From Ruditapes philippinarum (lineage: Eukaryota): a DNA stretch of 64,000 bases. The notes under the pieces were generated by a model, which was not told the DNA's origin, ran no database searches, and worked only from the letters and a program-made list of their open reading frames with translations. Shown one piece after another: positions 481 through 49,876 of the stretch; position 1 is the first letter of the stretch, and every line of letters begins with the position of its first letter. The DNA lies in contig NW_026855418.1 of NCBI RefSeq assembly GCF_026571515.1, forward strand, positions 62,001 through 126,000, written 5' to 3'. Both the position numbers and the translations under genes were made by a program.

Positions 481-2183
481 TTATTTTAACGACACAAAAT
501 AAAATACGCATTTACGACATTCATATAATTTTGAAAAGTGCCGTATGGCTAGACAATACAGCATATACAGTGTGTCTTTGCTAGCTTTACATGACTCACA
601 TACGGCTAGTATGTTTGGCTACAGTAGCCGTACGGGCCCGTACGGCTAGCCACTTCCATTCATAAACCACCGAAAACATGTATTAAAATTACTGTATACG
701 GTACCTCATACATGTACGATAAATTAATCATTTTGATTCTTTGAATTTAATTCTGATGAAGAATCAGATATGTTCGAAACTGGTAGATCTTAATTAAAAT
801 ATTGTCCATATTTATCCGGTATTGATGTGTGGTTTCTTTACATTCTTCCGTTTTAACCAATAATTTTAAGATAAAACTTCCCGGCACTTCCAGACACTTT
901 ATGAGTTTATCTCCTCCGGACAAAAATATTAACTAAAACACTATGAATATCATATGAACAGATAAATATGAGCCAATCTGACTCAAGCTTAACGTGTATA
1001 GAGTTGACTTAGGGCAGACTTATTTGAAATTCAATGGTTGGTCATGCCCTGATTCAATGCTGTTAATTATTACTTTAAGCCAAACTACTAGATCTTCAAG
1101 AATAATATCATGGCAGAATTTGAATATCTTAAAATAACACATGGTAATTAATTTATATTAATTCAAACAAACTTACCATGTTATGACTAGTCTAGAGTTG
1201 TATCCTTTTACGGTTTCACACACTTTAATATACAATCCCAGCTTGAATAACACTCCTTGCACAGAATTTGTTGAATTTAGGTATATTTATGTTCAACCAA
1301 ACAAAAACTGTAATGGACAATTCATTCACAAAACAGTATATTGTTCGGCAAGTAAACAAATACCCCATCTTTTTATTCAGTGCAATATTTGATGACAATA
1401 TTTTACATGTGTTAGTCAAAATGATCCAATATCCGAATTAATGCACAGTTTCACGGAAATAAAAATCAATCAAATTTCGGGAAATTGTTTGTCACTGCCA
1501 ACCAATTCTTATAAAATCAATGTATCCGTATGCCGTAAAACAAATTAAATTCCATGATTAATAGAATAACACACTTAAATCCCACATTTGAATTATCCAC
1601 GTTTCATCGATTCACATTTTCATTATGGCGGCTTTTATGAAAATATGAAAAGATCAATGGATTACCGAGTATTACTTCGCCGAATCTAAGTAAATAATAC
1701 TTTTACAAAATGATGCAAAAATGATTTTTTCATCAAATTCATGCAGTCCATATTCGAATTCAAGAAGATGAGACCACATTAGTGGTGTATAAATTGAAAA
1801 TTGGGCAATAAATATCCGAACACTTTTTTTTAACGTATTAGTAAATATTAACTCAGACGCGTACATATTGGGGCTCCAAACGGGAAAACATGAATCGCCA
1901 AAATGTTGAAAGTGTACTTAATTTATACATTCCCGAAAAAATAGCATAAAATAAAAAGAAAATGTGTTTGTTTTTAGTGTAAGATGACATTTTATTTATC
2001 TTGTGAGCTTTAAAAACAGTATTCTCAAAATTCTCAAAATATTGTAAAATTTCATCTTACACAAAAACAAACAAATATCCTCTATATAAACATTTTTGTT
2101 CATACAGGTACTTTGAGATACAAGTGTATATAGCTTTATAGACTAAAACAAACAAAGTCCCATTTTTTCTATAGAATACTTAC

Positions 2184-2621
2184 AACTTGAGGAAAGAGCA
2201 CTCCTTAGACTCATAGGTTCAACTTTCCATGACAATGAGCACGGGAATCTAAGTAATACACTGACGGTTGAAGAAATTTTTGATAAACATTGTTTGCTTT
2301 GACTGTCATCCATATATTTCAAAAGCGTGAGGATGCCTGTAACCGAGGAACAGGAAATTGGTAAAATGATACTCCCTATAAGAGGTTTGCCAACTCCGTC
2401 AGACAGGTCTTCTATATCACTGAACCATTCAATTAAATCATCTAGCAATTGTAGTGTAGGTTCTCCGTACCATTCAACCCTTTGTGTTATTATTCTTCTA
2501 ATTTCATCGCTACGAATTGCAGTATCACTATATATTATCTCGACAAACTCAAACAGTAAGTCGTTGGCTTTCCTTTGCTTTTCTTCAGTATCACATTCGG
2601 CTTGTATGATTATTCTTAACT
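2184..2621 (-). CDS. HEPN gene paralog (copy A), coding exon 3: TRADD-N-like domain
   Basis: cttcag|AG...AGTT|gtaagt, 438 nt, open. By hand count 18 of 146 aa differ from copy B. Downstream exons were not found in the window. Confidence 0.8.
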
Positions 2622-2839
2622 CTGAAGGTGATCATAAAATTTCCGAAATAGAAAAGAAATTACACACAGATCATTATAACATCATTATATCATTATTTAT
2701 TTATTTAGAAGCATGCGTATCGTACTTTCAGTGTGTGGATTTAAGGAAATATTAAAGAAATGAGCATTTTACAGCCAATATGTTATTTTTCACATTAGGT
2801 ATTTGAAATAAATATTAAAACATCAAAATGGTGGATTAC

Positions 2840-2920
2840 CTCGTGAATATTTATATTTTGTTTTCCGCAAGTGTTTGTTTTGCAAGTCGGTTAATTTCCG
2901 AAGTATTATTTCCTGGTTTC
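2840..2920 (-). CDS. HEPN gene paralog (copy A), coding exon 2 (GNQEIILRKLTDLQNKHLRKTKYKYSR)
   Basis: tttgacag|...CGAG|gtaatc, 81 nt, phase 1-1, homologous to 47456-47536. Confidence 0.8.
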
Positions 2921-2995
2921 CTGTCAAACACATTATTGTAATGTAGTGAAATCGTGAAAGTATATTAAATGGAATAAAAGGATATATCAATATTA

Positions 2996-3400
2996 TACGA
3001 GGGGTATTCAAATATGAATGCAACTGAGTCAATTTGTAGAAGTGCTTAACAAACAGTGCCAAAATAAATCTCTAAATCCTTTAAAATATATACCACCATG
3101 TGAAATACAGAGTCCAATTTCTTAAATGCGTTTTCATAGTCTTTTCGGGGTATACTGTTTAGAAAATGGAAAAAAGCCGGACAGAGATTTTTTCGCATAC
3201 GAGTTTTTCTTCAATTAAGGTGTTTTTGAGACTCGAAAATAGGAACAAATCACTAGGGACTAGATATGGCGAATAAGGAGGGTGAGGAAATCTACAACCG
3301 TTTCCCTGTTTCAGATATTCTCGTACAATGGCCGCTTTTTTTGACGAAACATTGCCATGCAACAACCTAACCAGTTACTTGTCGACCAGTTACCTGTCGA
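2996..3400 (-). mobile_element. Mariner transposon relic (3' end)
   Basis: TACGAGGGGTATTCAAA terminal sequence at 2996. The translation LHGN...HPPYSPYLVPSDLFLF is a decayed HDNA / HPPYSPDLAPSD mariner motif. Absent from the paralogous intron. Confidence 0.85.
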
Positions 3401-5641
3401 TTTGCACTACCTGGATCCGAGGCTTGAATATTATTTAATGTGAAATATAATGAATTGGTACTATTTGATACTGTTCAAGTTATGACTACAGCTGAAATAC
3501 TAAAATATTCTGAAAAATTTAATATATGGCGGCCATCTTTGATTTTGGCTGCCATATTGGATTCACACAATCCGGATCCCAGGCTTAAATCAAAAGTATT
3601 GTCTCAACCAACAACTGTGCCAAGTTTCATGCTTTTCACAAGAGGTCACAATTCCTTCTATTTTATGCATAGATTTCTTGGAGTATTTGGACTCCATATT
3701 ATTTGAAACTTTTGTAGGAGGAAAGAGCATCTGAGAATTCCAATGTTATTCTACCAAATAAAATCGAATGTAGGTAATGTGACTTTGGGAATGTTTGAAT
3801 TTTTACCCTTTGGCAACAATAATACACTGTTCTCAAACATGTTATAAATGTGATATAACACAAAATTCACAGACGTGGCTTATAATGTCAATGTAATCTG
3901 ACATTGATCTACCATTATATGCTAAAATACTTATCAAATGCAATTATTCAGAGAATGTTGACATCCGATGTCTTGTTATCGAATTGTTATTAATCTTTCT
4001 TTGGTACAGAGACTATCGGAAAGATCAAAACAAATGTCAAGCATATATGTGGGAGAGTAACTCATCTAGAACGTTGCGTTAATGGCTGACCTTTATTTTC
4101 TTTAAATATGTGGCACTTTTTGACATTTTTTTTAATTAATGATTTTGATAAATTGAGTTAAAGTTTTTTTTAAACCACACTTTAGAATAAATTAAAAGAA
4201 ACGCAAAGGTCAGACAAACAAAATTTAAAGTCGTTACCGGATCTGATGTAATATGTGATCCCGTTCTGGAGCTACTTTGATATCTATCAGTTTCAGTTTC
4301 AGAATACTTCTCTAAAGCCTACTATATTGACGAATAAACTGATTAAGCAACAACAACAGAAAACTGTGTGTACGTGCTTTATGACAAATATGTGATTGAT
4401 ACCAATAAGCTTTGTTGCACTTATTTATCTTAGCTGTTGAACATAAAATGCAATATTCCACAATTGTCATATTGTATCAGTCCCACAAGTTATTTAAATC
4501 TTTAACAATTTAAGTTCCCTAAAAACCTTTTCCATACGGAAACTATTAGATAAAAAGGTATGAGCATTACTAGGATAAATGTTTTGTATACACACCAAAA
4601 TTCATAAATAGCAACAATTTTTCACAGCAATCCTGCAAGTTTTTGATTACTTGCTTATGCCCTGATTATTTAGTGATCCTGACTTTGTTTGAAATAAAAA
4701 AACAAAATGCAAATTTAGATATAAACTTTAAATTTGATTAAAAAAATGTCATCCTTGTCGTACTGACAGTAAAGTCAAGCTACTTCTATTTTTAAGTTTA
4801 GCAATATGCTTGCTGATTAATACTTATCGTACCTCTTTTCAAGAAATTGTTTGTTTGTTTGTTTCATTTTACACCTTTTCCCAACAGTATTTCAGTCATA
4901 TAGGCGGGTAGTTTCCCAACCATCGTTCCTGGAGAGTTACAACAGTACTTGACTACCTTCCTCCGCGCTAAACTACCAAAGCATCTCCCGCCAGAGAGGT
5001 AACTGGATTAGAAGTCATCGACTCTAACCCCTCGACCTTCGAGACGGTTTTCAAGAAATGTATGCACAGTTACACACTACTTTGCAAGAATTGTACTATT
5101 AATATTTGTATTAAGAGTAGGGATGTCTTAAAATGAAGGTTTTAGCACTTTAAAAAATGAATTTATGTAAGATTATTTTAAGTTATCGAAATAGAGAAAT
5201 TAAATATATATTCAAAATCTATAAAGGAAGACCACTTGCAAAAAGTATCAGGTGCATACATAATGAAACTAGATAGTCTAGTAGAGTTTCTTGTTGATAT
5301 GCCAAATTATCGGTATAGTGAAATTTAGAAAAGGAAATTTCACAGGAACGAATTTAAATAAGGTTACCTAGTGAGGATACCAAGTTCTTTGTACCGATAT
5401 GTTCATATGCCATGCTTGAAGCTTTTGGTACATGAAAAAAATTATTCTGATAAAGGTGTTTAATCAAATTTACCGTAATACAATAGATACACTTTTAACC
5501 CATTCTGACAATATAAGCAGTTAATTGCTATGAAATGGTATTTGTCTTTGTAAGCAAGTATGTAGAATGTATTAATTTGTATAGTTCAAAATAACAATTA
5601 GACCATTCTGGAGTCATAACAATGAAAATTACGTGCATTAC

Positions 5642-6236
5642 CTTGAATAGAAGAGACTTTTTCATTGACGCAGTGTACCATGTCTTCCATAGCTGACAAG
5701 AAACTTGTCTTGAAGTCATAAATCTCTTTAATGAATGTAAAGATGAAATCTGAATCAATTCTGCCTGTTGCCGTTCTTTTGATAATATTTTCGATTTCAA
5801 CTATCCCATTTATTCCTGATGCAATTTGTCGTAAAGCCTGCTCTAGTAGCTGTCGATTGCTAGAATAATCTGATGCATTCATAGACAATTGTGTCGGATG
5901 TCCTTGGAAAGCATTCCGATAGGTCTTCAAAGATTTCAGATAAGCACTTTCTGAAAGGGACAGACCTTTCCAAAAAAGTCGTTTAAGCACAACAAATATT
6001 AGAGTCATATCCCAAGTGTTAATATCTGCGTTTACTGTCGTAGGGGTAGGAAACAAACGATTTTGTTGTTCCTTTAAAACATCGTTAAACTGAGCTCGTC
6101 CATTATGCAGAAGAGTATCGAGTGTGCTACCGCTCTTTGTTGCTTCTCTAAATACAACACCTCGTAATACAAACAAACCTCCCTCGCCTAGCAGCCATAG
6201 GTATCTCAAATACCTCTCTTCATCTAACGATGCCAT
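5642..6236 (-). CDS. HEPN gene paralog (copy A), coding exon 1: DZIP3-like HEPN domain
   Basis: ttgtag|AATG, donor CAAG|gtaatg, 595 nt like copy B. RNAFQGH motif at 5898-5918. By hand count 47 of 198 aa differ from copy B. Confidence 0.85.
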
Positions 6237-9200
6237 TCTACAAGTTAAATTTAAGATGCTACAGTATGACATTATGTGCTTTTTGTATTTATCAGATATT
6301 TGTGTACAACCGAGATTTTAAGAAACGGCTTTTTTCATTTTTGAAAACAACGCAATACAGAGTAATTCTTTGAAACTATTAGCAAAGTGTAAAACTGATA
6401 TAGAAATAAATATTAACTGAAAAATGTACCTTTTAATACATTTTATTATTATTTTGATAACTATGCACACTCAAAACGACACAACACTTAATATTTGTTT
6501 CCATTTCCCGAAACAACGCATTTCTACTTTTCACCTCATAGATCGAGGAAATTATTATAGACTTATACACATTTTAATCTACTATCGATAAAAATATAAA
6601 CATTCCCTACACACTTTGTAAAATCCATTAACTTCAGTAAAGTATTGAAGAGATCTTTTGCCAAATCCTTATGTTCTATAGAAGAACTGTATTAGGACGA
6701 TGTCATTCCATTAGAATTGTAAAAAGCCTAAATAAAACTTTGTATCTTATATTTTAGACCGTTATCCTTATAACATGTTGAATAAAGTACTTATTAGGAT
6801 TGTATTCATCCTAATTAAACTCTTATGTAGTAGTAACAAATTCTTAATAGGAAACAACGCCCTAATTAGGATTAAATTTTTCCTTATAAGGATTATTCAT
6901 ATTTATAAATTTTTAACAGGAGAATTATAGTTACTTCTTCTCATTAGGCTTTTGAAATGTTCGATTACGGGTTGATAAGATCTAATAACTTAAAGGCTTT
7001 TGCAATTTCTAATAATGAATTCATTTTATAAAACATTGAGATTTGGCACCAGGACGGTCCCGTAGTTAGCTATGTGATTATATATAAACAGACAAAATGT
7101 TTAGATATAAGCGCTTTGATTTTATTTATAAATGAAATCGTTGAATACCTTTACAAGAAGCACAGTCCTGCATATACGGTAAATGGCAAAATTATGTCAA
7201 CGATAACAACTTCCTCTTCTTAAATGCATTACTGTTGTTAATACAATGTATATTATAATCCTCGTTTTTTGTAACTTCAATATTTTGTCTTGTATCTTAC
7301 ACTGTATCTCACAGCAGAAACGAGGTCATTAAAAGCGGAAAGTCTTAGCTAATATTATAATAATTGATACATTTGTACACAGCACAACATATACGATATC
7401 GCAAATGAATTTAACTCAAGACATTCAAATATCATTTTTTTGTTGTTGAAAGATTCGCGATACCATTTTGATGTTATAATAATTTTACTTTTATTTAAGA
7501 GTTGCAAACCCTAATAAAAATCTTAACGTAGAATCTTTTGGTTTGCTTGCGATTTTCCCCTGATAGCTCATTTCGAGTAAGCAACATACTCGATTAGGTT
7601 AAGAAAGTTTTTGGGTTCAGATTCTTGTCCAGACAACTCAAATTTTAAATGTCGCTTTAGTGATGTTAACATGTTATCTGAAGAACTTCCTATTCCTATC
7701 CGTTATCCATAAAAACGTATAAAGGTCAAGAATGTTGTGTACAAAGTAACGAAATATTTCATCTTTAAATAGAAAAATACAAGAATTGTGTTTGTATTTG
7801 CATTGTTCAAATATCAATTTCATACTAATTTCATTAACTTGCTAACTTACTTTATTCCATGTGCATATTATTTGCTTCGTAAATGAACATGTTAAACTTT
7901 GTTTGTCTTTATGTACTCGTCATATTTTGCAAATTATAGTAGTTGTTAGTAGTTGTCCTTTTGGTATCAGTATTATTTCATACCATGCATTTTGTTACTG
8001 ATTTGGTATAAATGTTAGATAAAGCAGTTATATTTATCGGCAACAGAGGAAAATAAAATTTCATATAATGTTCAAGACACATTTTCATAGAAACCTTAAT
8101 TATTAACGCTGCACCTACACTTTAATTATAGATATTATTGATTATTGGCTTGCAGCCACGGCTGCAAGCCATCTGTTTTGGAAAAGTTGTTCCGGTTAGG
8201 TGGTTTCCTGCTTACATTTGTTAGTGCATGATTGAACGGGAAACCAGCTACAATCGTACCAATCGCAACTTTTCGGCCCTTTCCGTCACTCTTCGGATTA
8301 ATGATAACAGCCGATGTAGTTCCGATTGCAATCGTGACAATTCGGGCGATTCCGTCATACTGCGGAATCAGACGAAGTAATACTACGGAAATCTAAGCTA
8401 TTTTAGTTACTTCGGTAATCCCAGTTTGTTTATATAAATAGAATTTCTATTTTTACTTGATTTATCGGTTTTAACCGTAATAAATTGTAAACGAAATTGT
8501 TCCGTTTCAATTCTTTTTCAAGACGCAAAAGTTAGTTTCTTTTATAATTGTTTTTTTTGTCTGTATTAGTTTTATACAACAGAGAACGGTTACTGTAGTA
8601 GTATTCCGTCTCCAAAGGGTGGTCCTGCTTACCAAATCACACAGAATATTAGTGCATGATCGAGTTATATTTAGATCTACTGAACGCAATTCAACGTCTT
8701 GGTGAGGTAATCTAAAAATAGCCCATGCATATCATTAACCTTACCACGTGCTGATCTACAGATAGCGCATCGTATCTGTGATCGTGTAACATAGTTGATA
8801 CATGCTTATTAATTGGTACCACGTAACGAAGTATTTTAGTGCATTTACTTGTCTATAAAGCTGCTATATAAATGAAATTAGCAACGATTGATTATTTTCT
8901 TTATTAGTTTTATACAGTAGAGAAGAGATTTCAAATCGTTTTGACAAAAAATATTCGTTTTTACAAAAAACAAACAACTTAATAAACCCTTTATGATATA
9001 TATACCGTAATTCAAAAAAATTGTGGTAAGAAGTTGAAAAAAAACAAACACAATTTTAAATGGTTGGGATGAAGGCACAACTGACTTTTAAAAGGAAACT
9101 TTATTTTTTTATTCATTTGTAATGTATAAGTTTCATTTTACTGTACCTGAGCAAGGTATTTTCGTGGGAGATGTGACACATAAAACATATATATCATCTG

Positions 9201-23440: not shown

Positions 23441-23597
23441 NNNNNNNNNNNNNNNNNNNNNNNNNNNNNNNNNNNNNNNNNNNNNNNNNNNNNNNNNNNN
23501 NNNNNNNNNNNNNNNNNNNNNNNNNNNNNNNNNNNNNNNNNNNNNNNNNNNNNNNNNNNNNNNNNNNNNNNNNNNNNNNNNNNNNNNNNNNNNNNNN
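23441..23597. other. Assembly gap (157 N) in intron 2 of the secreted-protein gene, after a poly-C/A-rich tract
   Basis: Run of N in the sequence. Confidence 1.
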
Positions 23598-24152: not shown

Positions 24153-24664
24153 GAAAGAATTCAAATCAAGACAAACCAGTTTCTATGAAACGTTCTCATG
24201 GTTTACATTATCGGGATGACATCTTAGACAACTGGTCAAACCTTGGTATCAAGCTGGTTAAATTTGCGTTCTATGATACTGACAAAGAGGTGGCATACTT
24301 GATCTTCAACGGGAAAGATAGCGACATGAACAACTGGTTTGATAAGAGCCGCGTCATTGACTCCAGTTGGCCAGACCTGACTTCCAAAAGTACATTTAAC
24401 AAATTCTCCATTGCAGGACATACCATAACTAATCTACATGATCGTCGTTTCTACATCAACAGAAATTATGGTGGATGTGCAAATGACCGTGGTCACCTTG
24501 CAGTTATCAATTCAGCTGTATCTAAGCCCGTATGTTTGTTTGACAGCCAGCCATCGTACCCAGCATTTATATATTCGAAATATAATTCGGTCGACTTCTT
24601 TCAGAGAAGAATGTTTGGTACTGCAGATTTCATGGTGGTTTCCATAAAAACACACGTTGGCTAA
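24153..24664 (+). CDS. Secreted protein gene, exon 3 (terminal); total CDS 708 nt, 235 aa, uncharacterized extracellular domain
   Basis: ttttcag|GA, open to TAA 24662-24664. Motifs HYR..LDNW, WF...R...SSW.DL, FSI.G, R.F.IN..YGGC..D.G, C.F. AATAAA at 24903-24908. Confidence 0.88.
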
Positions 24665-37670: not shown

Positions 37671-37952
37671 TTAATGAGTGAGCTTATGTCTCCAGAGGTA
37701 ATATACTCCCATACCAACGAAACATATTACACACGCCATTACTAAATCAACTTCTGCTAAACTCTCACGCCAATTACGTGGCAAATAGTCAACATATTTT
37801 CGTTTCATGGCATTTTCAAATACAAATAGTAGTCTTTTAGTGATGCTCAAGAATTGCTCAGTTCTGTCCAGATCCACTGCAAAACCTGTTATTTGTACCG
37901 GTAAGACTTCCTTGTACAAGTGCCATTTGTCTTCATTCGATATAAGTTGAAC
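37671..37952 (-). CDS. Candidate distal terminal exon with C-terminal transmembrane tail anchor
   Basis: tttgccag|GTT, phase 0, 94 codons to TAA: VQLISNEDKWHLYKEV...LVMACVICFVGMGVYYLWRHKLTH*. Phase-compatible with exon 7, but it may belong to a separate small gene. Confidence 0.45.
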   Translation of the reverse strand, partial: VQLISNEDKWHLYKEVLPVQITGFAVDLDRTEQFLSITKRLLFVFENAMKRKYVDYLPRNWRESLAEVDLVMACVICFVGMGVYYLWRHKLTH

Positions 37953-38992
37953 CTGGCAAATAAATTTACGTTATTTTATTTAAACTATATAAAACAGAAC
38001 AAAAGACGAAAGTATCTCACCCTTTCAGGATACATGTATTTCATTGTGAAACTTAGGTGATGTCACTTGTGCACACAATTGATTACCTTAAAGTGGTTTG
38101 TACATCTCTGGTGTTCTTAAACTATTTTTGATAAGTTATGTAATTAAACAAAACATTTGTTTTAAATTGATAACTACTTAGACACATATAAAAAGGCCAA
38201 GAATAGGCACATATTGCTAACCTGATATTAATTGCTATCTCCACCACATGATTTCAACAAAAATGAGAATAAGTCAAGGTGTTGTGAGGGATGTTGCACT
38301 GTTCCAATATACCTTATGAATAGACTCACACAAACCGGGTTTCAATTTGCATGTTTTTCTTGTTAAAAAAGTGGCATATTTCAGCCATGGTTAACTAGGC
38401 AAGGCAACATCCTTATCATCTCTCCTATTTATCTTGTGGTTTCTGTGGAGGCTATCTTTTATAATTACTTTTTGATATATGTCTTTCTAACATTACTGAG
38501 CAGTTACGCTCCGTTCGCAGTTCAATGAATACACACGTTTCTTCACACGTAAGAAAGTGAGCGATAGCAAAACATTGGAACGATGCGCAGGAAAGAATTG
38601 CAAGCCATGTTCGATCCCAAATTACTAAGCATAACTAAAGCCCACTTAATCTAAGCTCTAGACCATTTGATGAAACAACGAGAGAAGAAACAAAGGCGCT
38701 ATCATTTTTAAGCTATGCGTACATATATTGTTCCTTTTTTACGCCGTGATTAACACGTTTGGTCATATATCGGCGATCAAGTTACTTGGCCTTTAATGAT
38801 AACTAACTTGTAATTTCTTCGTTTGTGACTGACCATTAGTTATTTATGATAAATATCCTAAGTCAGCGGTAAGACACACAAATGACTAATACTTCTAATC
38901 TCCGAGATAAATTGTCACGGCTCATTTCCCACGTCCAAAACGACTCCAAGAGTTCATATTCGGTACTCGACCAATTGAGCTAAGCTATATGT

Positions 38993-40646
38993 AAAGGCCC
39001 TGTCTAAGTAGACTGCACTTTCACTTCGTTTGCACGGTGTTGTTAAATTACACAAAGCGCTATGAGATCGCAACAAAATATGATATTTTCGATGACATGG
39101 AGACTTCACGGCGTCCTTACGGCGATCATGGTGATGGTACGGCGCTAGTCGGCGTTTTAATTGGCGATAGTCTGCGTTCGGACTGTGCTTCTACTGTGTT
39201 CTCTGCGCTTGTATGAAGCTCTCGCCGCGCTCACACTACACTGAAATCGTATAGCTCCATGAACACGCTGTATAGGCGCGGCAGAAACGCCACACAATCC
39301 AATGTCCGTGGATAACCATCGGTTCATTCGGCGTTTTTTGTTTGCTTTTACGGCGTTCCTGTTGCGTTGTAGGAGATGCTATTGAGTTGCTACGACGTCT
39401 TTTTCTGCGAGCCCACTGCGCTCTTATCAGAACACCGAATGGCGGCGTTTGTTAAACCCCTGTCACAATAGGGCGGCGTTCTCACGGCGTCCAAAGAAAA
39501 TTCAGAACGCAAATTCAGAACGCCGAGGTGAGCGCATTAAGATCGTAAACACCGCCGCAGCAGCACCACAGCATAGAAGTGGCATCGCATAGACCGCCGA
39601 CCGACGGCGCACATTTTTAGCATGCTCAAAACAGACGTTGTCACTCGGCGTTCAGAAAATAGCGCTGTGGGATCGCAGTAAGGACGCCGTAGCAACTTGG
39701 TTACAACCCCTTCAACGCAACAGGAGCGCCGTGAAAGCGCAGAGGGAACGCCGAATAGACGACGTAATTATCCATGGCGCTTGTACGGAGATTGTGCGGC
39801 ATCTCTTCGTCGCATATACTGCGTGTGTACGGCGCTTTTATTTTTTCAAAACGCTCTTATTGCGACTTTACACCACTGTCACGGCGACCAATGCACACAC
39901 AAGGCGATTCTAGTGCGTTCATCAAAATTGCAGAATACGGTTCAGTAGTACCCCTTCTTAAAACCACCCGGAATAAAGACCAACCCTTTGTTAATTATAT
40001 CCACAATTAATACCATCCGAAATTAAAACCATTTTAGTCCAGTTCCTTTGGTGGTCTTTATACTCTTTGAGGGTTTTCACTGTATATATAGAACGTGTTT
40101 GCAAGGAAATGTCCTTGGATGATGAACGACAGCAAGCTGGAAAATTGCTTGCTTGCATGCAGGTGCATTAGGTTCACGACTATTCAGAATGAGTAATCGC
40201 TGGTATATAAAGCACGATTTCAACGCAGTGTGAGCGCCGCGAGAGCGCCGTATAAAGGTTGTGAAAACAAAGTAGAAGAGCAGTCCGGATGCAGTCAATC
40301 GCCAATTAAAACGCCGTAAGAACGCATTGCAACGCCGTGGAAGCTCAGAAACAACGCCATGATCGCTTTGAGGACGCTGTTAAGACGCTGTGAAGTCTCC
40401 ATGTCATCTAAAATATCAGATTTTTCTTGCGATCTCGTGACGCTTTGTTAAATTTAACAACGCCGTGCAAACGCAGTAAAAGCGCAGTATGACAGGGCAT
40501 TCACGAGCATGCTTAAAATGCGCGCCGTCCGTCGGCAATCTATGCGATGCCACTACGATGCTACGGCGATGTTGGTGATCTAACTGCGTTCAACTCGGCG
40601 TTCTGAATTTTCTTTGGATGCCGCCCTTGTGGGACAGGGGTTTAAG
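38993..40646. mobile_element. GC-rich PIF/Harbinger-like MITE pair, one nested in the other in opposite orientation
   Basis: Ends ccctgtc(a) / gacaggg. 38995-39185 is the reverse complement of ~40280-40498, and 39453-39627 is the reverse complement of 40505-40645. Confidence 0.7.
39943..40082. mobile_element. Small Tc1/pogo-like MITE
   Basis: CAGTAGTACCCC...GGTTTTCACTG|TA termini, with an internal taaagacca/tggtcttta IR. Confidence 0.55.
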
Positions 40647-41178
40647 TTAACCTTAAATCTAATATCTGAGCCTAGTAGAAACACGGGATAAGATTGAAAG
40701 ATTAGTTAAGCTCTTTGTTATTATAGAAATATCTTTGTGAATATTACAAGATGTCTCCTTCCCTAAAAGGCATAATTTGTCAGTTTTAGGTATCATGCAA
40801 AAAAAAAAGCCAACAACTTTTTCGTCCTAATAAATGTTTCTAAGGGCGTGGCTGATATTTGATATTTTCAATATTTTAGTTACTAAGTACTACAAAGTTC
40901 TGTTATTACCAAAACAGTTTGTAACATGCATTCCTCGACTAAAGAAGATTTGATAATTAGTTTTCAATATAAGTCAAAGTAAGAAATGTATACCATAAAA
41001 CAGTACCAGGGAATAATTTATGTACCTTCTGTAGAGGTTAATTAAGAAATGCTACATAATAAATATCAAAGTCTTCAGCGTTGACATATGTTACAGTCTT
41101 ATTATAGGTGCTGTGACCTTCTTTTTTGCATGGAACCATTTATTGCTTTATTACACTGTTGTATAGATTTACATTATT

Positions 41179-41214
41179 TCATAGCTTTCTTGTAAAAATA
41201 GGTAAAGATTTAAT
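41179..41214 (-). CDS. Candidate proximal terminal exon (IKSLPIFTRKL*)
   Basis: cccctcctaatcatag|ATT, phase 0, TGA at 41179-41181, AATAAA at 41139-41144 on the minus strand. Confidence 0.5.
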   Translation of the reverse strand: MKSLPIFTRKL

Positions 41215-41328
41215 CTATGATTAGGAGGGGATGTTTGTAAAGATACCTTGCGATCACTAAAGCTCGGTTCTGAGCATTTTGTGAATCAAAACATCAATAT
41301 TTTTTAAGGGGAAAAAATGAATCGGTAC

Positions 41329-41481
41329 CTGTTGAAGTTTATTCTTTGTCTTTGATTTAATATCTTCATCCAACGTGGTACTATCCATGAATGTGTTAAT
41401 ATTCGTGAATATTTCAGTCATTTCCTTTTCCGAAATTGTGGTGTCGGGAGAATGACATAAATTGTTCCTGTGACGAATCAT
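41329..41481 (-). CDS. Dual-HEPN gene (copy B), exon 7: DUF4559 HEPN motif RNNLCHS
   Basis: ttacag|ATG...CAACAG|gtaccg, 153 nt, phase 0-0. MIRHRNNLCHSPDTTIS corresponds to the CXorf38-type RNEIMHS motif (R-x4-H at 41452-41469). Confidence 0.85.
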
Positions 41482-41716
41482 CTGTAATTCAAACAAGCTA
41501 GTTACATAGGTATATACTGTCCAAATGTTTACAAGTTGTTGTTTTTTGTCTTTTACTAGTATGTGCGTCTTAAATATAAATATTTTCCAAAACGTTTATT
41601 TATCCGCTTTTTATTTAAAATATCAACTCTTTCACTAATCCTCTTATATACATATGCCACTTTTAAAATTTTCCATTGGGATAGAAGAAATAGATAAACA
41701 ATAAACATGATAGTAC

Positions 41717-42243
41717 CTGATCTATTGCATTCCTTTCCTTAGCAAAATTTTCCAGTTTGAAGTTCCTCAACAAATTAAGTATTGCGTGCATGTCTGTATC
41801 CTTTGGAGAAGTGCTCTTCTTGTTTCCCCGTGGCATGTATAGCTTTGCGATTTTCCAGTAACTTTCCACATTACTATCTCCAATATTGTCCCATTCAAGG
41901 TTTGCTGGTTTCCAATGAGCTGAGACAAGCTTCTTCAACAAAGACCTACACTCTGGTGCGTTAACCTCCCATACAAGAGGTTCTTCAACTCGTCTTAATT
42001 TGTATACTTTGCATCGATTTTGAGCGATATCTAGCAAATTTTGAAGGTTGTTTTTCTCAGAAGGAGTCAAACTGTCGAAGAACTGTTTGAAAATTGACCT
42101 CGCTAAATATGTCATAGCTTCATCTGCTGTGATCTTAAGTGCAAGTATTGACATTACCCAATTAACCTCTTCCCTTCTGCTGAAGTCTTCCTTTCTGCTG
42201 AAGTCAAGCAATTCCGACATTTCATCTGTCATTGATAGTAAAT
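41717..42243 (-). CDS. Dual-HEPN gene (copy B), exon 6: CXorf38/DUF4559-like domain, first part
   Basis: tttttttag|AT (phase 1) ... GATCAG|gtacta (phase 0), 527 nt. NWV...LAL, W.N......YWKIAKLYMPRG....P...D..AILNL match my recollection of the CXorf38 family pattern (NWVK...WEVAKAFMPRG....P...D..ALL.L). Confidence 0.85.
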
Positions 42244-42868
42244 CTAAAAAAACAAGACTAATGGCAATAACATATGTCGTTTTTCTGCCTTTATTTGAAG
42301 TACAATATAACAACATTAAATTGTTCAAAGCAATTATAATTGATAACCCTATAGGTAGGCAATATTAAATTTTATTTATATAGATAATATTATTTGATTT
42401 AAGAGAAGGTTATTAGACACAAAAATAGTGTTAAAATGAGAATAAAACAAAGTTCCTTTAAATTATTTAAAACATTATGTAAATCCCATTTAGAATACGT
42501 TGAAAATATTTCTATATTACTATGATAAAGACTTGAACTTTAATGTTCATTGTTCTTTTGTAAGTATATTATCTATTCGGTTTATTTTTGATGTGATGGA
42601 TATGATTCATTCGGTTTTATACGTATATATTGAGCTGTCCGTCCGTTTGCCCGCTCATGCAACATTAACAACAACAACAACAACAACAACTTTTAGAAGA
42701 CTATTTCAATGATGAACAGCATAAAGGAATATATTTTCCCCTATAAAAAAAACAACAAAGGCAATGCCCTGGAGTCCATTTCAGTCAAATGTCTGTCCGT
42801 CTGCTCAAACGGTGAATATCAGTCAATAATATGATTATGACATCTTATTACATGTTTTTGGTGGTTTA

Positions 42869-43281
42869 TAGATATATATCAGTGATAAAAAACTGATAAT
42901 TTCACGGTTTTAAACAGTGAAGTTATCAATTTGATAACTTCACTGTTTTGAATTCGAGCCTCTTACGTTGTTTCAGTGAAATACTAGCGTGCACAGTACT
43001 GGGAACCACTTTCAAGACGTAACATCGTAAATGACATCATGTATTATTATTTGGCGCGCTTTTCTTTAAATGTTATGTTACAGTGTCTTTTTAAACGTTT
43101 CTTTCCATATAATGAAAAGAAATGTGTTTAGTGTAGTTTAAGATCGAAATATATTTCACCTTGTGAACACCAAAAGTTCATATTTCACTCGTGGCTGCGC
43201 CACTCGTGAAATATAACTTTTGGAGCTTACTCGGTGAAATATATTCCGATCTTACACTGAACTTAACAAATATCCTCTATA
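42869..43281 (+). mobile_element. Hairpin-ended non-autonomous element (same family as 55-480)
   Basis: Long IR around gtggctgcgccac (43191-43203). Ends aacaaatatcctctatat. Reverse-complement match to 55-480. Confidence 0.75.
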
Positions 43282-43866
43282 TCTTACTGGCTGCCGTATA
43301 TAAAATGATTTTATATGTTTCCCATTAATAACACTTTGATATTTGAATTTACCAATGAGGAATATTCATGAACGACTCATGAATATTCATTGTTATTTAT
43401 TGTAACTTTCATTTAATATAAAAATAATACATACAATTATTTCGAGTATATGCATTGAATTAGAGCGTTTAAAACGAAAATTTACTGAATAATGTAAACA
43501 AAACAGAAAAAAATCCCTAAGTATAGACCAAGCGTTAGCAAAATGCAAATGGTAAAATTATGCATTTTGAAGCATCCGCAAATAAATTTAACACAAATCG
43601 AAGCCACATCGGTACAGATTGATAGACATGCGATATAAAAAATATCTATAAACTGTATTCTAACAAAGATATGAACTTTTTTAGCCAGGATATCTAATGT
43701 GTTATGAACTCAAAGGTTTATATATACAAAGGTGATTTATATATTTTCTTGCAGTACACGTCATATCCTATTCACAAAAAGTCAAAGCAATACAACCTCT
43801 CATTTATGAATAATTATGTTGTTTATGGTAACAATATGATGTTTGGACTATAAAGATAATGTTTAC

Positions 43867-43971
43867 CTTCACCGGAATCAGACGAACTTAACTTTTTCTG
43901 AGTTCGCTTCTTGTCTTTTACGTCAGATGATTGGCCATCAATTAATTTGTCAGGTTGGCTTTCAGTATAAC
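43867..43971 (-). CDS. Dual-HEPN gene (copy B), linker exon 5b (identical tandem copy of 5a)
   Basis: Same 105-nt sequence and splice sites as 44819-44923, inside a ~955-bp tandem duplication. Confidence 0.6.
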
Positions 43972-44818
43972 CTGAATGAATGAGTCAAACAATGGAAAAG
44001 TTATAGCATAACTAAATGTACTAGTATATAAAAAGAAATAACAGTGCGTTTTCACGAAATTGTTGTTTATTGCTATCATGTGCATATCTGATAAAACTGA
44101 TATTATTATACATGAATGGGGTTTGGTACCGATTTGCCATCTGTTTAATTTTTGTTCTTTTTGTATTTTTGGTAGTGTTAGATAACCCTTTGTATCACGA
44201 CAGAAGGCCTAACGGAATTCACCAGAGCACAGTTGATCCACTGCATCGTTCCTGAACAGGTTGTGAAGCAGTTTACTATTTGACATACTGCCTTTTGTTT
44301 TGCAAAAAAATGATAACAACTGTACATGCTAGAGCAAAAGTAGAGAACAAATGACCGTAGAAAGCATTTCATGATTAATCAGTATGAAAATGACCAGCAC
44401 CGTCTTAAATGCATTGAATTTAAAGCGTTTTAAACGAATATTTACTGAATAAGGTAAACAAAACAGAATAAAATCCCTAAGCATAGACCAAGAGTTAGCA
44501 AAATGCAAATGGTGAAATTATGCATTTTGAAGCATCCGCAAATAAATTTAACACAAATCGAACCCACATCGGTACAGATTGATAGACATGCGATATAAAA
44601 ATATCTATAAACTGTATTCTAACAAAGATATGAACTTTTTAGCCAGGATATCTAATGTGTTATGAACTCAAAGGTTTATATATACAAAGGTGATTTATAT
44701 ATTTTCTTGCAGTACACGTCATATCCTATTCACAAAAAGTCAGCAATACAACCTCTCATTTATGAATATGTTGTTTATGGTAACAATATGATGTTTAGAC
44801 TATAAAGATAATGTTTAC

Positions 44819-44923
44819 CTTCACCGGAATCAGACGAACTTAACTTTTTCTGAGTTCGCTTCTTGTCTTTTACGTCAGATGATTGGCCATCAATTAATTT
44901 GTCAGGTTGGCTTTCAGTATAAC
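44819..44923 (-). CDS. Dual-HEPN gene (copy B), linker exon 5a (GYTESQPDKLIDGQSSDVKDKKRTQKKLSSSDSGE)
   Basis: ttcattcag|G...GAAG|gtaaac, 105 nt, phase 1-1, open, S/K/D-rich and probably disordered. Not in the ORF track. Confidence 0.7.
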
Positions 44924-45482
44924 CTGAATGAATGAGTCAAACAATGGAAAAGTTATAGCATAACTAAATGTACTAGTATATAAAAAAGAAATAACAGTGC
45001 GTTTTCACGAAATTGTTGTTTATTGCTATCATGTGCATATCTGATAAAACTGATATTATTATACATGAATGGGGTTTGGTACCGATTTGCCATCTGTTTA
45101 TTTTTTTGTTCTTTTTGTATTTTTGGTAGTGTTAGTTAACCCTTTGTATCACGACAGAAGGCCTAACGGAATTCACCAGAGCACAGTTGATCCACTGCAT
45201 CGTTCCTGAACAGGCTGTCAAGCCGTTTACTATTTGACATACTGCCTTTTGTTTTGCAAGGAAATGATAACAACTGTACATGCTAAAGCAAAAGTAGAGA
45301 ACAAATGACCGTAGAAAGCATTTCATGATCAATCACTACAAAAATGACCAGCACCGTCCGAACACGGGTCGCTCGATTCACAGTTCAACGCTCTACCTAT
45401 TGAGCTAATCGGACAGTATTTGTATTTTTTCTCTTTACTTATATTAATCCTTATAAATAACAAGCTAATGTCCAAATGTTAC

Positions 45483-45713
45483 CTTTTTCATTTACAATAC
45501 TCCGTAACTGATCATTGTCAACGTTTGTTTTAAGACTAATGGTTTCTCCGAATATTTTTGATAATGAAGTGGATATCTTTTCCATATTACTGCTTCTCTC
45601 TGCTTCGCCGAACATTTTACAAATATCTGTCAACTGTTCTATATTAATGGCATTAATAGGTAATACTAAATTCTTCACTTCTTTTGATCTTTTTCCTTTT
45701 CCAGGGCTTAATA
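45483..45713 (-). CDS. Dual-HEPN gene (copy B), coding exon 4: diverged second TRADD-N-like repeat
   Basis: tgtttcag|TA...AAAG|gtaaca, 231 nt, phase 1-1. LVLPINAI...KISTSLS...SL...V....LRS aligns without gaps over 59 aa to the C-terminal part of exon 3. Confidence 0.75.
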
Positions 45714-46690
45714 CTGAAACAGATATTACAAGTAAGTTAACGTCATTAAATGAAAGAAATGTAAGAAACATTTTGAAATTTCTTAACTCTTTTAAATTGC
45801 AATTTGACCAATTAAAACATATCAAAATTGGTCATGATTTACAAGCAGCACAGTTTGAAAATACAGAAACGAAGAAAAGAGCAAAGACGCATCTATTTCA
45901 ATTGGCACATGTCTTCCCAAGAAAGACAACTGTTCCATCCCGTATCTAATTTTTATTGTAATCGCGTACGCCGACATTGATAGGCTCTGTTTAAGAGATT
46001 TTTTATTTCAATTGAATATCCAAACAAATCAAGGGAAAACAGTTTTTAGTATTATAAACGTCACTTTCATCAAAAATACATTGCGAATACTCTTGATATA
46101 TTTTTATCTTTTTTGCCAATGTGTACGCTCAAAGTACTTAACAAATTTTGGTCTTTGGAATTAAAAACACTAAAGTACTTAGTACATGTATATCAATATC
46201 ATGTCAGAACGACTTTTATTTGGAAGTATAAATTTTCTAATAGAAGAGAAAGCGATTTAGCTAAAAAGCTGAACTCTTTGAAAATAATTCCATCGGTAAA
46301 ATATTTTGAGCATTTTTCGAGCGTACTTTATTTTCAAAATATTTCCCTTGTTCGTACTTTGAATTTTTATAAGAAATCTAAACTTATGCTATTGATGGTT
46401 GGAGCTTAAACAAATTGTAATCGTATTATTATTCTATCATTAATCTTATGGATATAAAACGAAAACAGAATAAAATGTTCCGGATAATGCTGCAACTGTA
46501 AGGAGAGTTTTATTTAACCGTTGAATGATTTTGAACATGATAATTCACGTTTAAGGAAATACAAACAACAGTTACTTTGAGTTTATTCATTTTCAAAATT
46601 ATAGCAATAAATGTTGTAAATTATGAGATGCAGATATAACGTTTTATAGACTTAAACAAACGAAGTTCCCTATTACTAAATAATACTTAC

Positions 46691-47128
46691 AACTTGTGGG
46701 AAGAGCACTCGTTAGACTCATAGGTTCAACTTTCCATGATAATAAGCACGGGAATCCAAGTGATACACTGATAGTTGAAGAAATTCTTGATAAACATTGT
46801 TTGCTTTGATCGCCATTCATATATTTCAAAAGCGTGAGGATGCCTGTTACCGAAGAACAGGAAATTGGTAAAATGATACTTCCCAAACGAGGTTTGCCAA
46901 CTCCGTCAGACAGGTCTTCTATATCACTGAACCATTCAATTAAATCATCTAGCAATTGTAATGTAATTTCGCCGTACCATTCAACCCTTTGTGTTATTAT
47001 TCTTTTAATTTCATCGCTACGAATTGCTGTATCTCTATGTATTAACTCGACAAACTCAAACAGTAAGTCGTTGGCTTTCCTTTGCTTTTCTTCAGTATCA
47101 CATTCGGCTTGTATGATTATTCTTAACT
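46691..47128 (-). CDS. Dual-HEPN gene (copy B), coding exon 3: TRADD-N-like domain 1
   Basis: ctttcag|AG...AGTT|gtaagt, 438 nt, phase 1-1, no stops. Contains GSIILPISCSSVTGILTLLKYM, which resembles the GS(I/L)IL.V.C.S...L..L signature of TRADD-N-like domains. The domain name is inferred by eye. Confidence 0.8.
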
Positions 47129-47205
47129 CTGAAAGTGATAATAAATTTTTCCGAAATAGAAGAAAAATATGTACATATTATAATTACTTGTTTTTCATTT
47201 AATAT

Positions 47206-47240
<35 letters not shown>

Positions 47241-47455
47241 CTATTTATTTATTTATCTATCTATTTTTACATTTATATGTTTTTATTAATTTATTTAGTT
47301 ATCATTTATTTATTTATGTATGAAGAAGAAGAAGAAGCATGCATACCGTAGTTCAAGTGGGCATCAGGAAATTGTCATTATTGAGCTTTTCAAAGGTCAA
47401 TATGTTATGTATCATATTAGGTATTCAAAAATATAGTATTTAAAGTCTGAATTAC

Positions 47456-47536
47456 CTCGTGAATACTTATGTTTTGTTTTCCGAAAGTGTTTGATTTGCA
47501 GGTCAGTCAACTTTTGAAGTATCAGTTCCTCATTTC
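47456..47536 (-). CDS. Dual-HEPN gene (copy B), coding exon 2 (81 nt, GNEELILQKLTDLQIKHFRKTKHKYSR)
   Basis: ttttgacag|...CGAG|gtaat, phase 1-1, open frame. The paralogous exon at 2840-2920 keeps both splice sites and differs by several synonymous changes. Confidence 0.8.
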
Positions 47537-49281
47537 CTGTCAAAACACATTATTTTAATTATTTCAATTCCTTTTCTTTGAAAAAGTGAATCCATAAATG
47601 TAATAAAAAATGTGACAATATCGATGCACAATTCAGTTAAACACGCTTGAATATAACTAGGAATTCCAGTATAAGCTGATTACAGCCGGGACATATGTTG
47701 TCGAGTGGTAACGTTCATTCAAACCACTTGTCATTCCCCGATGTGGGTCTGAGTCCCGGCATGTAAGGAACCTATTACCCTAGTTTACGGAACATCGACT
47801 GGAATCGTTCTGACATCAGAACTTAAATTTTTGAAACACTACCATGTTCTATGGAAACAAAAGCAGCAAGAGCTTTTATTATATGCTTACTGTTTCTTAA
47901 ATTCTCCAGTGCAAGGGACCAAATATATAAATTATCGATGTCATTTGTATTTTAACTATCACAATATGCAGTTATTTGAGTTTTTAAAGATCTATCTACA
48001 AGGTCTGAATACATTTTCGAATTACCCGAGTGTACGGCCTCAAAAAATAAAATATCAGCTTAATATCAACTTAAAACGATTTATTTTAAATTGGCAAAAT
48101 CTGACGGTTTCATAGAAATGATAAGCTGGTACAGTATCGGAAATACATGTATGCCGGTCTCGTGTCCGAGCTTCTATGCTGTCTGTCAGTGTTGCAGTTT
48201 CTTAGGATTACTTATGTCAAAAGTCATATATATTTTGTCGAGCTTTATATCACAAATATGTATTTGATATCAATACATATTGTTGCACTTCTTTGTTCTT
48301 CAATTGGACTAGGTTGTCGAATAAAAATGCAATATCTAAATCTTGCCATATACTACCAGTCTTTCGAATTATTTAAAACTTTAACAGTTTTAGTATAACG
48401 ATTTTTTAAAATAAATGTATCGAAAAATATGATTAATGTTTGCTATACAAACATGACCATAATTAGTAAAATAGTAACCATCTTGCAAGTCTTTGATTTC
48501 TTGCTAAGGTTGTGATTATTAAATAAACCTGATTTTTGAGCGTTAATATATGCAACTTTAAATGTTTTATTCGATACAAAAAAGTCATATCTTTTGTACT
48601 TACAGTAAATATACAAAGTAAAGATATTGCAAATTTTGCAGTTCAGAAAAATGTTTGCTGATTTTAAGTACTTATTGTACCTCTTTTCAAGAGCATTAGA
48701 GTAAATTAACTACGGAATTGGATGCACATGTACGCAATTTGCAATAATTAATAAATGTATTATGAGTCAGACTGAATGGTATTGAAGGATTTAATACCAA
48801 AGCAAAGTGCATTTGTTTTGCAAAAACATTGAACAAAGTTATCAAAATAAAGGAACCAAATATATATTCAACATTTGTACAGGGAGACCACGTGCAAAAA
48901 ATGTATACATAATAAAACCAAATTTTGTGATAGAGTTTCTTTTTTGATATGCCAAATTATTGAAACTTATCTATCTTTAAAAACTATATGCTTCAATAAG
49001 GTTTCCCAGGTAGGAGAACGTTCTTTGTACCGATATGTTCATATGTTCTGTTTGAAGCCTTTGGTACATGTAGAATATTTAATCTGCTAAATGAGTTCAA
49101 TCAAATTTACCATAATACCATTAATACAATTTTAACCAATTCTGAGAAGATATGCAGTTAATAACCATAAAAAATGTATTTGTCTGAGTAATTAATCGTG
49201 TAGACTGTATTAAAATAATTTATTTTACAACAACAATTATAACTATTTAAAAAGCATAACAACGGAAATTATGTACATTAC

Positions 49282-49876
49282 CTTGAACAGAAGAGAATTT
49301 TGAATTGACATGTTGTAGCATGTCTTCAACGGCTGTTAAGAAACTTGTCTTGAAGTCATATATCTCTCTTATGTGTGTAAAGATTGAATCCGAATCAATT
49401 CTGCCTGTTGCCGTTCTTTTGATAATACTTTCAATTTCAACTTTCCCATTTATTCCTGATGCAAGTTGTCGTAAAGCTTGCTCAAGACGCTGTCGATTGC
49501 TTAAATAATCTGATGCATTCATAGACATTATCGGAGGATGTCCTTGGAAATCATCTCGATAGGTCTTCAAAGTTGACAAATCAGCTCTTTCTATAAGGGA
49601 CAGGCCCGACCTAAAAAGTTTCTTCAGCACAACAAAGAGTATTGACATATCCCAAGTGTATGTATCTGCGTTTACTGTCGTAGTGGTAGGAAAAAGACAA
49701 TCGCGTTGTTTCTGTAAAACGCCTTTGAACTGAGCACGTCCATTCTGCAGAAGATTATCAAGAGTGCTACCGCTCTTAGTTGTTTCTCTCGATATAACAC
49801 CTCGTAATACAAACAAACCACCCTCGCCTAGCAGCCATAGGTATCTCAAATATCTCTCTTCATCTAACGATGCCAT
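49282..49876 (-). CDS. Dual-HEPN gene (copy B), coding exon 1: DZIP3-like HEPN domain
   Basis: ATG at 49876 is preceded by the acceptor ttgcag|A. Donor CAAG|gtaatg; 595 nt, ends phase 1. The translation has the DZIP3-type HEPN pattern (Q..LFP...WDMS.LF.VL...L..LK.YRDDFQGH). The R-x5-H motif is at 49538-49558. Confidence 0.85.

Follow-up and report, generated by a model that had tools for sequence, protein, structure and literature searches.

The stretch analysed here, called the window, comprises 64,000 nucleotides (nt) of the venerid clam Ruditapes philippinarum (contig NW_026855418.1, handle C3905, positions 62001-126000), from a 1.4 Gb, AT-rich genome of about 31% GC. The minus strand of the window carries one expressed clam gene, whose two halves are spliced into one RNA. 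The first half encodes a DZIP3-type HEPN domain and a TRADD-N-like module, and the second encodes a CXorf38/DUF4559-type HEPN domain followed by a predicted tail anchor. The supported product is 803 amino acids in length, as counted in the script from the length of the open frame and the position of the stop codon. Coordinates below are window positions, and exons lie on the minus strand unless stated otherwise.

Exon 1, 49282..49876, minus strand: 595 nt, begins at the ATG, GT donor checked; DZIP3/hRUL138-type HEPN domain.
Exon 2, 47456..47536, minus strand: 81 nt, phase 1-1, AG/GT borders, open frame; short charged helical linker.
Exon 3, 46691..47128, minus strand: 438 nt, phase 1-1; TRADD-N-like alpha+beta domain.
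Exon 4, 45483..45713, minus strand: 231 nt; diverged half-copy of exon 3 by profile alignment (hhalign), joined to its neighbours in an RNA contig.
Exon 5, 44819..44923, minus strand: 105 nt, phase 1-1; linker rich in Ser, Lys and Asp, the upstream one of two copies of this exon.
Exon 6, 43867..43971, minus strand: 105 nt; downstream copy, identical to exon 5.
Exon 7, 41717..42243, minus strand: 527 nt, phase 1-0; N-terminal two thirds of the CXorf38/DUF4559 HEPN domain.
Exon 8, 41329..41481, minus strand: 153 nt, phase 0-0; catalytic helix of the DUF4559 HEPN domain.
True last coding exon, 37671..37952, minus strand: 93 codons and a TAA stop (37673-37671); helical region, then tail anchor.
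Ninth exon of a first-pass annotation, 41179..41214, minus strand: no contig on it, outside the transcripts seen.
R-x5-H motif RDDFQGH, 49558-49538, minus strand: in exon 1.
R-x4-H motif RNNLCH, 41469-41452, minus strand: in exon 8.

The exons were recovered with a script that used the lengths given in the first-pass annotation, AG/GT borders and an open frame; for the 81-nt exon, and also for the 438-nt exon, it returned two alternatives. Exons 1 and 3 to 8 stand as annotated, with the lengths given, AG/GT borders and an open frame, whereas the ninth exon of 36 nt is without RNA. The annotated product of 756 residues is replaced by one of 803, with a single copy of the 105-nt exon and a last exon that begins at 37952. 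The two 105-nt exons had been drawn as separate exons; they are identical tandem copies of which the transcripts seen carry one, and the last exon as drawn had missed the true one with its tail anchor. The two R..H motifs lie at the termini to which they had been assigned. As the middle exons are all in phase 1-1, any of them may be skipped and the frame stays intact.

RNA evidence comes from the region 41140-47135, which was compared with contigs of three runs (X1 to X3, from three studies) and with one raw RNA-seq run (X21). We take the X1 to X3 contigs to be derived from transcripts because they are spliced at GT..AG sites. Contig 8 of X2 (644 nt) aligns with 46843-46691, 45713-45481, 43969-43867 and 42243-42089 in succession, thereby joining exon 3, exon 4, a 105-nt exon and exon 7. 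Contig 1 of X1 (806 nt) aligns with 44922-44819, 42243-41717 and 41481-41327, and so runs from a 105-nt exon through exon 7 into exon 8. The joints 42243->43867 (X2) and 42243->44819 (X1) are bordered by CT..AC, which is GT..AG on the minus strand. The junction between adaptor exon and DUF4559 exon is thus present at exactly the predicted place in two independent studies; this is the joint 43867->42243 for which an RNA check had been proposed, and 44819->42243 is seen equally. The joined form is covered as deeply as the exons on either side of it, at about 5.8 in X1 and 10.3-10.6 in X2. The joints between exons 3 and 4, between exon 4 and exon 5 or 6, and between exons 7 and 8 were confirmed as well, the last of these (41481->41717) in all three runs. 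Run X21, of which about 4% was sampled, has almost no reads on the exons and is uninformative on strand, ends and level.

Exon 8 continues in X2 and X3 into an overhang that maps to 37921-37950, which places the acceptor of the last exon, cag/GTTCAACTT, at 37952 if two ambiguous bases are allowed for; the X1 contig extends about 20 letters beyond exon 8. The exon at 41214-41179 was rejected as last exon, as the X2 and X3 contigs leave exon 8 for 37952. A 22-nt overhang before exon 3 in X2 matches 47458-47479 exactly (and also 2842-2863 in a paralogue), and exon 2 was placed at 47536-47456 because of this match. The other candidate for exon 2, 48158-48078, is also 81 nt long and fits the frame; it has no RNA support and was rejected.

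Exons 5 and 6 are identical at 105 of 105 positions and in their splice sites, so that the placement of a contig on one or the other is arbitrary. Both belong to a unit of about 952 bp that is duplicated in tandem (43447-44300 against 44406-45254, 96.8% identity by blastn). The duplication may be very recent or may represent two haplotypes assembled in tandem. Counting both exons was rejected, as the contigs show a single copy between exons 4 and 7. An isoform with both copies would have 838 amino acids and may exist, since assembled contigs drop rare forms. A weak joint in X3 leads from a 105-nt exon directly to exon 3, skipping exon 4, and would give a product of 726 amino acids. Downstream of exons 4, 5 and 6 we found neither a terminal exon nor a stop.

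Domain searches and structure models were run on single exons. Exon 1 is a genuine DZIP3/hRUL138-type HEPN domain, as judged by Pfam, by conservation of the catalytic Arg and His and by fold, in agreement with its first identification. It scores 26.7 bits (E 5.3e-6) against PF18738, for which the cut-off is 27, and 19 of 21 exon-1 paralogues match the same family (best E 6.5e-13). By BLASTP it matches the HEPN domain of XP_053380981.1, a predicted protein of Mercenaria mercenaria that we call P0013, at 3e-11. Across the 21 paralogues, which range down to 31% identity, the Arg of RDDFQGH (R107) never varies and its His (H113) is conserved in at least 90%. Several copies share the Asp that comes after the Arg, a position at which most relatives have Asn. 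The AlphaFold2 (AF2) model of the exon has a mean confidence (pLDDT) of 88.6, and among 48,161 chains compared by VIA-align its best structural match, with Z 8.2 across 114 residues, is to Csm6 (HEPN domain, 4rgp_B). This match stands 2.2 Z units above the next row, and the list also holds Swt1, 2hsb/AF_0298, AbiF, HepT and another Csm6. A Foldseek search of the PDB gave no significant match for this model.

The assignment of exon 3 as TRADD-N-like has moderate support. Its AF2 model (pLDDT 77) shows the order beta-alpha-(two inserted helices)-beta-beta-alpha-beta, as in an RRM-like sandwich. In the VIA-align comparison the TRADD-N structure 1f2h gives Z 5.0 at a root-mean-square deviation of 4.2 and the longest alignment (105 residues). 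TRADD-N domains carry a conserved tiny-Ser ('uS') signature in the beta2-beta3 turn, in which the Ser is sometimes Cys (Kaur et al. 2021, PMC8195603). In exon 3, G82 is invariant and S83 at least 90% conserved (Cys in one paralogue); both directly precede strand 84-89, and this Gly-Ser sits in the beta2-beta3 turn and corresponds to the signature. In the ESM Atlas exon 3 reaches a score of 0.94 and shares 220 of 256 features. Clusters that carry PF20694 make up 15 of its 30 matches, which serves as a lead only. Aligned by hhalign with the PF20694 matches of the genome itself, exon 3 reaches E 4.8e-4 at a probability of 32%, and the homologue P0024 reaches only E 0.063 against the TRADD-N profile. 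Searches of the 12 exon-3 paralogues with PF20694 gave no match at E up to 5, a whole-genome scan with PF20694 gave no match landing on exons of the exon-3 or exon-4 type, Foldseek found nothing significant for the exon 3 model in the PDB, and the exon 3 profile gave chance-level matches only against PDB sequences.

Exon 4, judging from profile alignment, repeats the C-terminal half of exon 3 in diverged form: the two families align by hhalign with a probability of 89% (E 2.2e-6), residues 10-73 of exon 4 on 79-142 of exon 3. The ESM Atlas gave no usable match for exon 4 (score 0.76). Of the two TRADD-N-like domains first proposed, one is therefore upheld by these weak-to-moderate lines and the other as a half-copy, although the Pfam TRADD-like_N model recognises neither.

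Profile matches identify exons 7 and 8 as a CXorf38/DUF4559 HEPN domain with an intact canonical motif, and here too the initial assignment held. Against PF15112 (cut-off 27), exon 7 scores 42.3 bits over profile positions 5-135 and exon 8 scores 22.2 bits over positions 151-184. Exon 7 carries the conserved core W..C..H..W.N..AK.(Y/F)MP.GN. RNNLCH with its following Ser fits the family pattern RNxLxHS, which reads RNRLMHS, RNNIMH, RNTLFHS, RNSLFHS, RNALFHS and RNDLMHS in six stand-alone relatives and RNEIMH in human CXorf38 (preprint). CXorf38/DUF4559 has been published as a HEPN family within the Swt1-like group, with a Zn ribbon inserted into the HEPN domain (Anantharaman 2013, PMC3710099). 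In one relative, P0006, PF15112 and HEPN_Swt1 both match the same stretch. The Zn-ribbon region of the clam subfamily has only one invariant Cys and one invariant His, and the Cys-rich insert seen in P0018 is absent; the insert is vestigial at best.

An in-frame ATG lies four codons past the exon 7 acceptor, where stand-alone DUF4559 relatives start, and those stand-alone proteins end in a transmembrane or Gly-zipper tail. In the gene described here, a hydrophobic segment of 20 residues (37751-37692; Kyte-Doolittle mean 2.1 over 19 residues) ends 6 residues before the C-terminus, while the N-terminus of the protein is charged and helical and has no signal sequence. The segment is a predicted tail anchor and the protein is probably membrane-anchored. 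About 50 residues at the start of the last exon (the first 47-57) are conserved in the paralogues and in P0002 (XP_060573980.1), a Ruditapes philippinarum protein that maps to contig C14702 with 98% identity.

The gene belongs to a large family. We count at least 109 exons of the DZIP3-HEPN type in the genome, together with 13 that resemble exon 3 and 5 close DUF4559 exons, and four of these five sit downstream of a pair of HEPN and exon-3-type exons. The order HEPN, adaptor, DUF4559 on one strand recurs three more times, once on C3905 and twice on C14702; it is seen at C3905:51-68 kb and at C14702:82-95 kb. The exon 7 acceptor is kept in two paralogues (C3905:51.5 kb and C14702:85 kb) and lost in two others. 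In all four close DUF4559-exon paralogues the C-terminal Arg is replaced by Val or Ser and the His is mostly lost too, leaving the window copy as the only one of the five-member subfamily that keeps both motifs. The HEPN exon upstream of the two acceptor-keeping paralogues retains the N-terminal Arg and His. Since the paralogues lose the C-terminal Arg yet keep the N-terminal pair, the two R..H motifs do not seem to depend on each other. Each HEPN family also occurs without the other in the genome, at more than 100 loci for the DZIP3 type and about 10 for DUF4559.

Several of these paralogues can be described individually. A tandem paralogue lies at 2143-6272 (minus strand) and continues beyond the window to C3905:51518-52015. 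Its exon 1, with the motif RNAFQGH, shares 76% identity with that of the gene described here, and its exon 3 shares 88%. The DUF4559 exon of this paralogue follows after about 12 kb on the downstream side, past the window start, with the fusion acceptor conserved. The catalytic helix of this paralogue reads CHVNYLLRT, with Arg and His both gone. In the DUF4559 copies at C14702:120067-120561 and C14702:126150-126638 the exon 7 acceptor is lost (ag changed to aa, or absent), and one of them is without the ATG; they probably stand alone or are decaying. At C3905:27-29 kb lies a degenerate copy interrupted by stop codons.

An exhaustive HMMER search with exon 7 against 1.84 billion representative proteins returned 21 relatives, among which an N-terminal HEPN domain is present only in two Mercenaria mercenaria proteins, P0013 (1105 amino acids) and XP_053406940.1 (P0003, 634 amino acids). 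Searches for homologues led from P0003 to only 4 proteins and from the C-terminal part of P0013 to only 2. Because the two diverged Mercenaria predictions share the domain order of the clam gene, the fused architecture appears to predate the split of the genera Ruditapes and Mercenaria. In P0003, too, a linker (about 45 residues) is repeated in tandem. Another Ruditapes philippinarum protein, the SAMHD1-like P0026 (845 amino acids), combines an N-terminal HEPN domain (RNDLVH), a weak TRADD-like unit (GSILFKFTC) and an HD domain; it seems to fit a scheme of a constant N-terminal module with variable effectors, here dNTPase-like.

Taken together, we favour, with a probability of roughly 0.7, the interpretation that this venerid clam gene encodes a protein of the form HEPN-adaptor-HEPN-tail anchor that acts as a membrane-bound RNase effector activated by clustering. 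The predicted order along its approximately 803 residues is DZIP3-type HEPN domain, helical linker, TRADD-N-like domain with its half-repeat, charged linker, CXorf38-type HEPN domain, helical region and tail anchor. The gene may have arisen when a member of the HEPN plus TRADD-N-like family was spliced onto a formerly independent gene for DUF4559 and a membrane tail. Because stand-alone DUF4559 proteins start at the ATG of exon 7 and end in transmembrane or Gly-zipper tails, it seems plausible that a whole neighbouring gene was captured, through an acceptor 11 nt upstream of its start codon, and that this old start codon persists four codons into exon 7. The product would serve in the immune or cell-death repertoire of the bivalve. 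Its TRADD-N-like module would recruit or cluster chains. Once clustered, neighbouring chains would pair each HEPN domain with its like, and the composite R..H sites formed in this way would cut RNA, as in RNase L or IRE1.

A number of points weigh against this interpretation. RNase activity and membrane localisation are predictions, whereas the exon structure, the splicing of both halves into one RNA, the domain identities and the conservation of the motifs are shown here. On the domain side, the window copy of exon 1 falls 0.3 bit below the PF18738 cut-off; in the structural comparison of exon 3, 1f2h is tied with many ferredoxin-like folds (Z 4.5-6.4); and Pfam TRADD-like_N (PF20694) has no match on exon 3, exon 4 or their paralogues. 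On the RNA side, the runs X1 to X3 are classed as RNA by a guess only, their contigs come from de Bruijn assembly and show no single molecule from exon 1 to the last exon, and the RNA comparison ends at 47135, short of the predicted joint between exons 1 and 2. An X3 contig enters the intron before exon 7 by 57 nt, and some thin intron coverage is present; because of these two observations, an internal start giving a DUF4559-only product may occur. RefSeq annotates the C14702 paralogue as a DUF4559-only protein of 280 amino acids.

The last two points, like the coincidence of the in-frame ATG of exon 7 with the start of the stand-alone relatives and the loss of the acceptor in two further paralogues, would be expected if two neighbouring genes were present, one for HEPN and TRADD-N and the other for DUF4559 and a tail anchor, and the joined RNA were a minor read-through or conjoined transcript without a function of its own. 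We consider this unlikely. The joined form was assembled in two studies at a depth equal to that of the flanking exons, it keeps the frame through middle exons of uniform phase, and no terminal exon was found behind exons 4 to 6. Conservation of the exon 7 acceptor in two paralogues, and of the same order at two diverged Mercenaria loci, likewise argues for one gene.

A second alternative concerns the active site. As in Cas13, the two HEPN domains of a single chain could pack into one asymmetric site built from RDDFQGH and RNNLCH and gated by the TRADD-N-like module. Both motifs are intact in the window copy, two-HEPN enzymes of a single chain exist (Cas13), human ERMARD has been proposed to contain such a pair within one molecule, and the order from N-terminal to C-terminal HEPN domain is kept in Mercenaria. 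If true, animals would for the first time be seen to possess an enzyme of this kind, here a membrane-anchored RNase switch, and of the five-member subfamily the window copy alone would still be catalytically complete. The paralogues speak against it, as four of four have lost the C-terminal Arg, and mostly the His, while the HEPN exons upstream (at the two acceptor-keeping loci) keep both residues, and the C-terminal motif of P0013 is without its His. In addition, each HEPN family is common without the other and presumably pairs with itself, and about 500 residues with a disordered linker separate the two domains in the chain. A complex prediction with exon 1 and exons 7 and 8 as separate chains scored 0.00, which is no answer and counts neither way. 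On balance a shared intramolecular site is improbable, and pairing of like domains between chains is preferred.

A non-catalytic scaffold or sensor, in which one or both HEPN domains of a membrane adaptor bind RNA or partners without cutting, is equally doubtful: loss of the C-terminal motif in four paralogues means that close relatives keep the fold without catalysis, the Arg of exon 1 is followed by Asp where most relatives have Asn, and inactive HEPN domains are common (PMC3710099), but the window copy has both motifs in canonical form, the exon-1 Arg and His are conserved across the paralogues as described above, and RNNLCHS is the family consensus.

Other features of the window lie within the introns of the gene or at a distance from it. 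Within intron 6, the stretch 42740-43340 has an RNA depth of hundreds to thousands on both strands with many strand-switch joints, and 94% of the reads run into unlike AT-rich sequence; it looks like a dispersed, highly transcribed repeat that is not part of the gene. A repeat-like stretch at 45140-45540 in intron 4 reaches an RNA-contig depth of about 77 and is empty by ARAGORN and Rfam, as are the Rfam and tRNA scans of the locus as a whole. In intron 8, the GC content rises to 0.425 at 38000-40000, against about 0.31 elsewhere in the window, and an inserted element may be present; an open reading frame of 91 amino acids at 39638-39913 in the same intron is without a Pfam match. A run of 157 N at 23441-23597 represents an assembly gap or a masked stretch. 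At 24185-24664 on the plus strand, an ATG-started open reading frame of 159 amino acids is protein-like (rich in Trp and Asp) and has no Pfam match, and Pfam likewise gave no match on five other long open reading frames of the window.

In bacterial defence (Cas13, Csm6, toxins), and likewise when vertebrates respond to viruses or stress (RNase L, IRE1), HEPN RNases play a central part. To our knowledge, no bench study has yet dealt with the large HEPN expansions of bivalves. The locus offers an RNA-supported test case with two HEPN families, a TRADD-N-like adaptor and a predicted membrane anchor in one chain, and the neighbouring paralogues without the second motif are natural 'mutants' that provide built-in controls. 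The locus may reveal what activates animal HEPN effectors and whether CXorf38-type domains cut RNA, and also how new immune architectures arise by the splicing of a neighbouring gene onto an adaptor gene. The gene model itself is corrected here, and a paralogue stands in RefSeq as a 280-residue fragment.

Among known two-HEPN systems, Cas13 and the proposed dual-HEPN protein ERMARD likewise carry two R-x4-6-H motifs in one polypeptide. In Cas13, the two HEPN domains have been shown to form one site. Unlike in Cas13, dependence of the two clam motifs on each other is countered by the paralogue data. For human ERMARD (named EMARD in the preprint) the intramolecular pair is a proposal. RNase L and IRE1, of the KEN type, provide a working analogy, in which a HEPN RNase site is formed only when chains meet, on a membrane in the case of IRE1. 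In contrast to them, the clam protein is without a kinase, ankyrin repeats or a lumenal sensor, and the HEPN families differ.

Human CXorf38/DUF4559 (PF15112) belongs to the same family as clam exon 7 (42 bits) and shares its RNxLxH-type motif. Its RNase function is predicted, not proven, and it is described as a stand-alone, soluble protein, whereas in the clam copy a HEPN-adaptor extension precedes the domain and a predicted tail anchor ends the chain. The two Mercenaria proteins, listed in RefSeq as 'uncharacterized protein' on the basis of computer predictions, resemble the clam gene: they have an N-terminal DZIP3 HEPN domain, a C-terminal DUF4559-like region and TRADD-like 'C.s' units between them, and P0013 ends in a Gly-zipper tail. 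Their DUF4559 part is only 28-46% identical to that of the clam gene; P0013 carries a pair of HEPN units at its N-terminus and lacks the His of the C-terminal motif, and P0003 stops before the catalytic helix. The first-pass annotation had called the architecture uncharacterised. We found no description of it in the literature searched, and the papers cited here on HEPN-TRADD-N fusions, DZIP3-HEPN expansions and CXorf38 list neither a combination of DZIP3-HEPN with CXorf38-HEPN nor a tail anchor, although these unnamed RefSeq predictions share the domain order.

At the level of families, expansions of DZIP3-HEPN proteins in bivalves have been reported (Anantharaman 2013, PMC3710099; Takeuchi 2022, PMC9646362), with NACHT, TPR, RING, ankyrin, CARD, Death and LRR as published partners and no partner of the CXorf38 family. 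The clam gene resembles them in its HEPN family (PF18738), in the R-x4-6-H motif and in having more than 100 copies per genome. Fusions of HEPN and TRADD-N with diverse architectures are known as lineage-specific expansions in bivalves, cnidarians and brachiopods (Kaur, Iyer, Burroughs, Aravind 2021, PMC8195603). Like those, the clam gene combines an N-terminal HEPN domain, a TRADD-N-type adaptor and a variable C-terminal predicted effector, in a large, fast-evolving and tandemly arrayed family of a sessile marine animal. It differs from them in having neither DED nor Ig domains, in an effector that consists of a second HEPN domain of another family with a tail anchor, and in a TRADD-N-like domain too diverged for the Pfam model. 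The combination of domains is undescribed, but it belongs to a known, fast-evolving and immune-like family of bivalves, and adds a further arrangement to a group of genes already noted for shuffling domains in many combinations.

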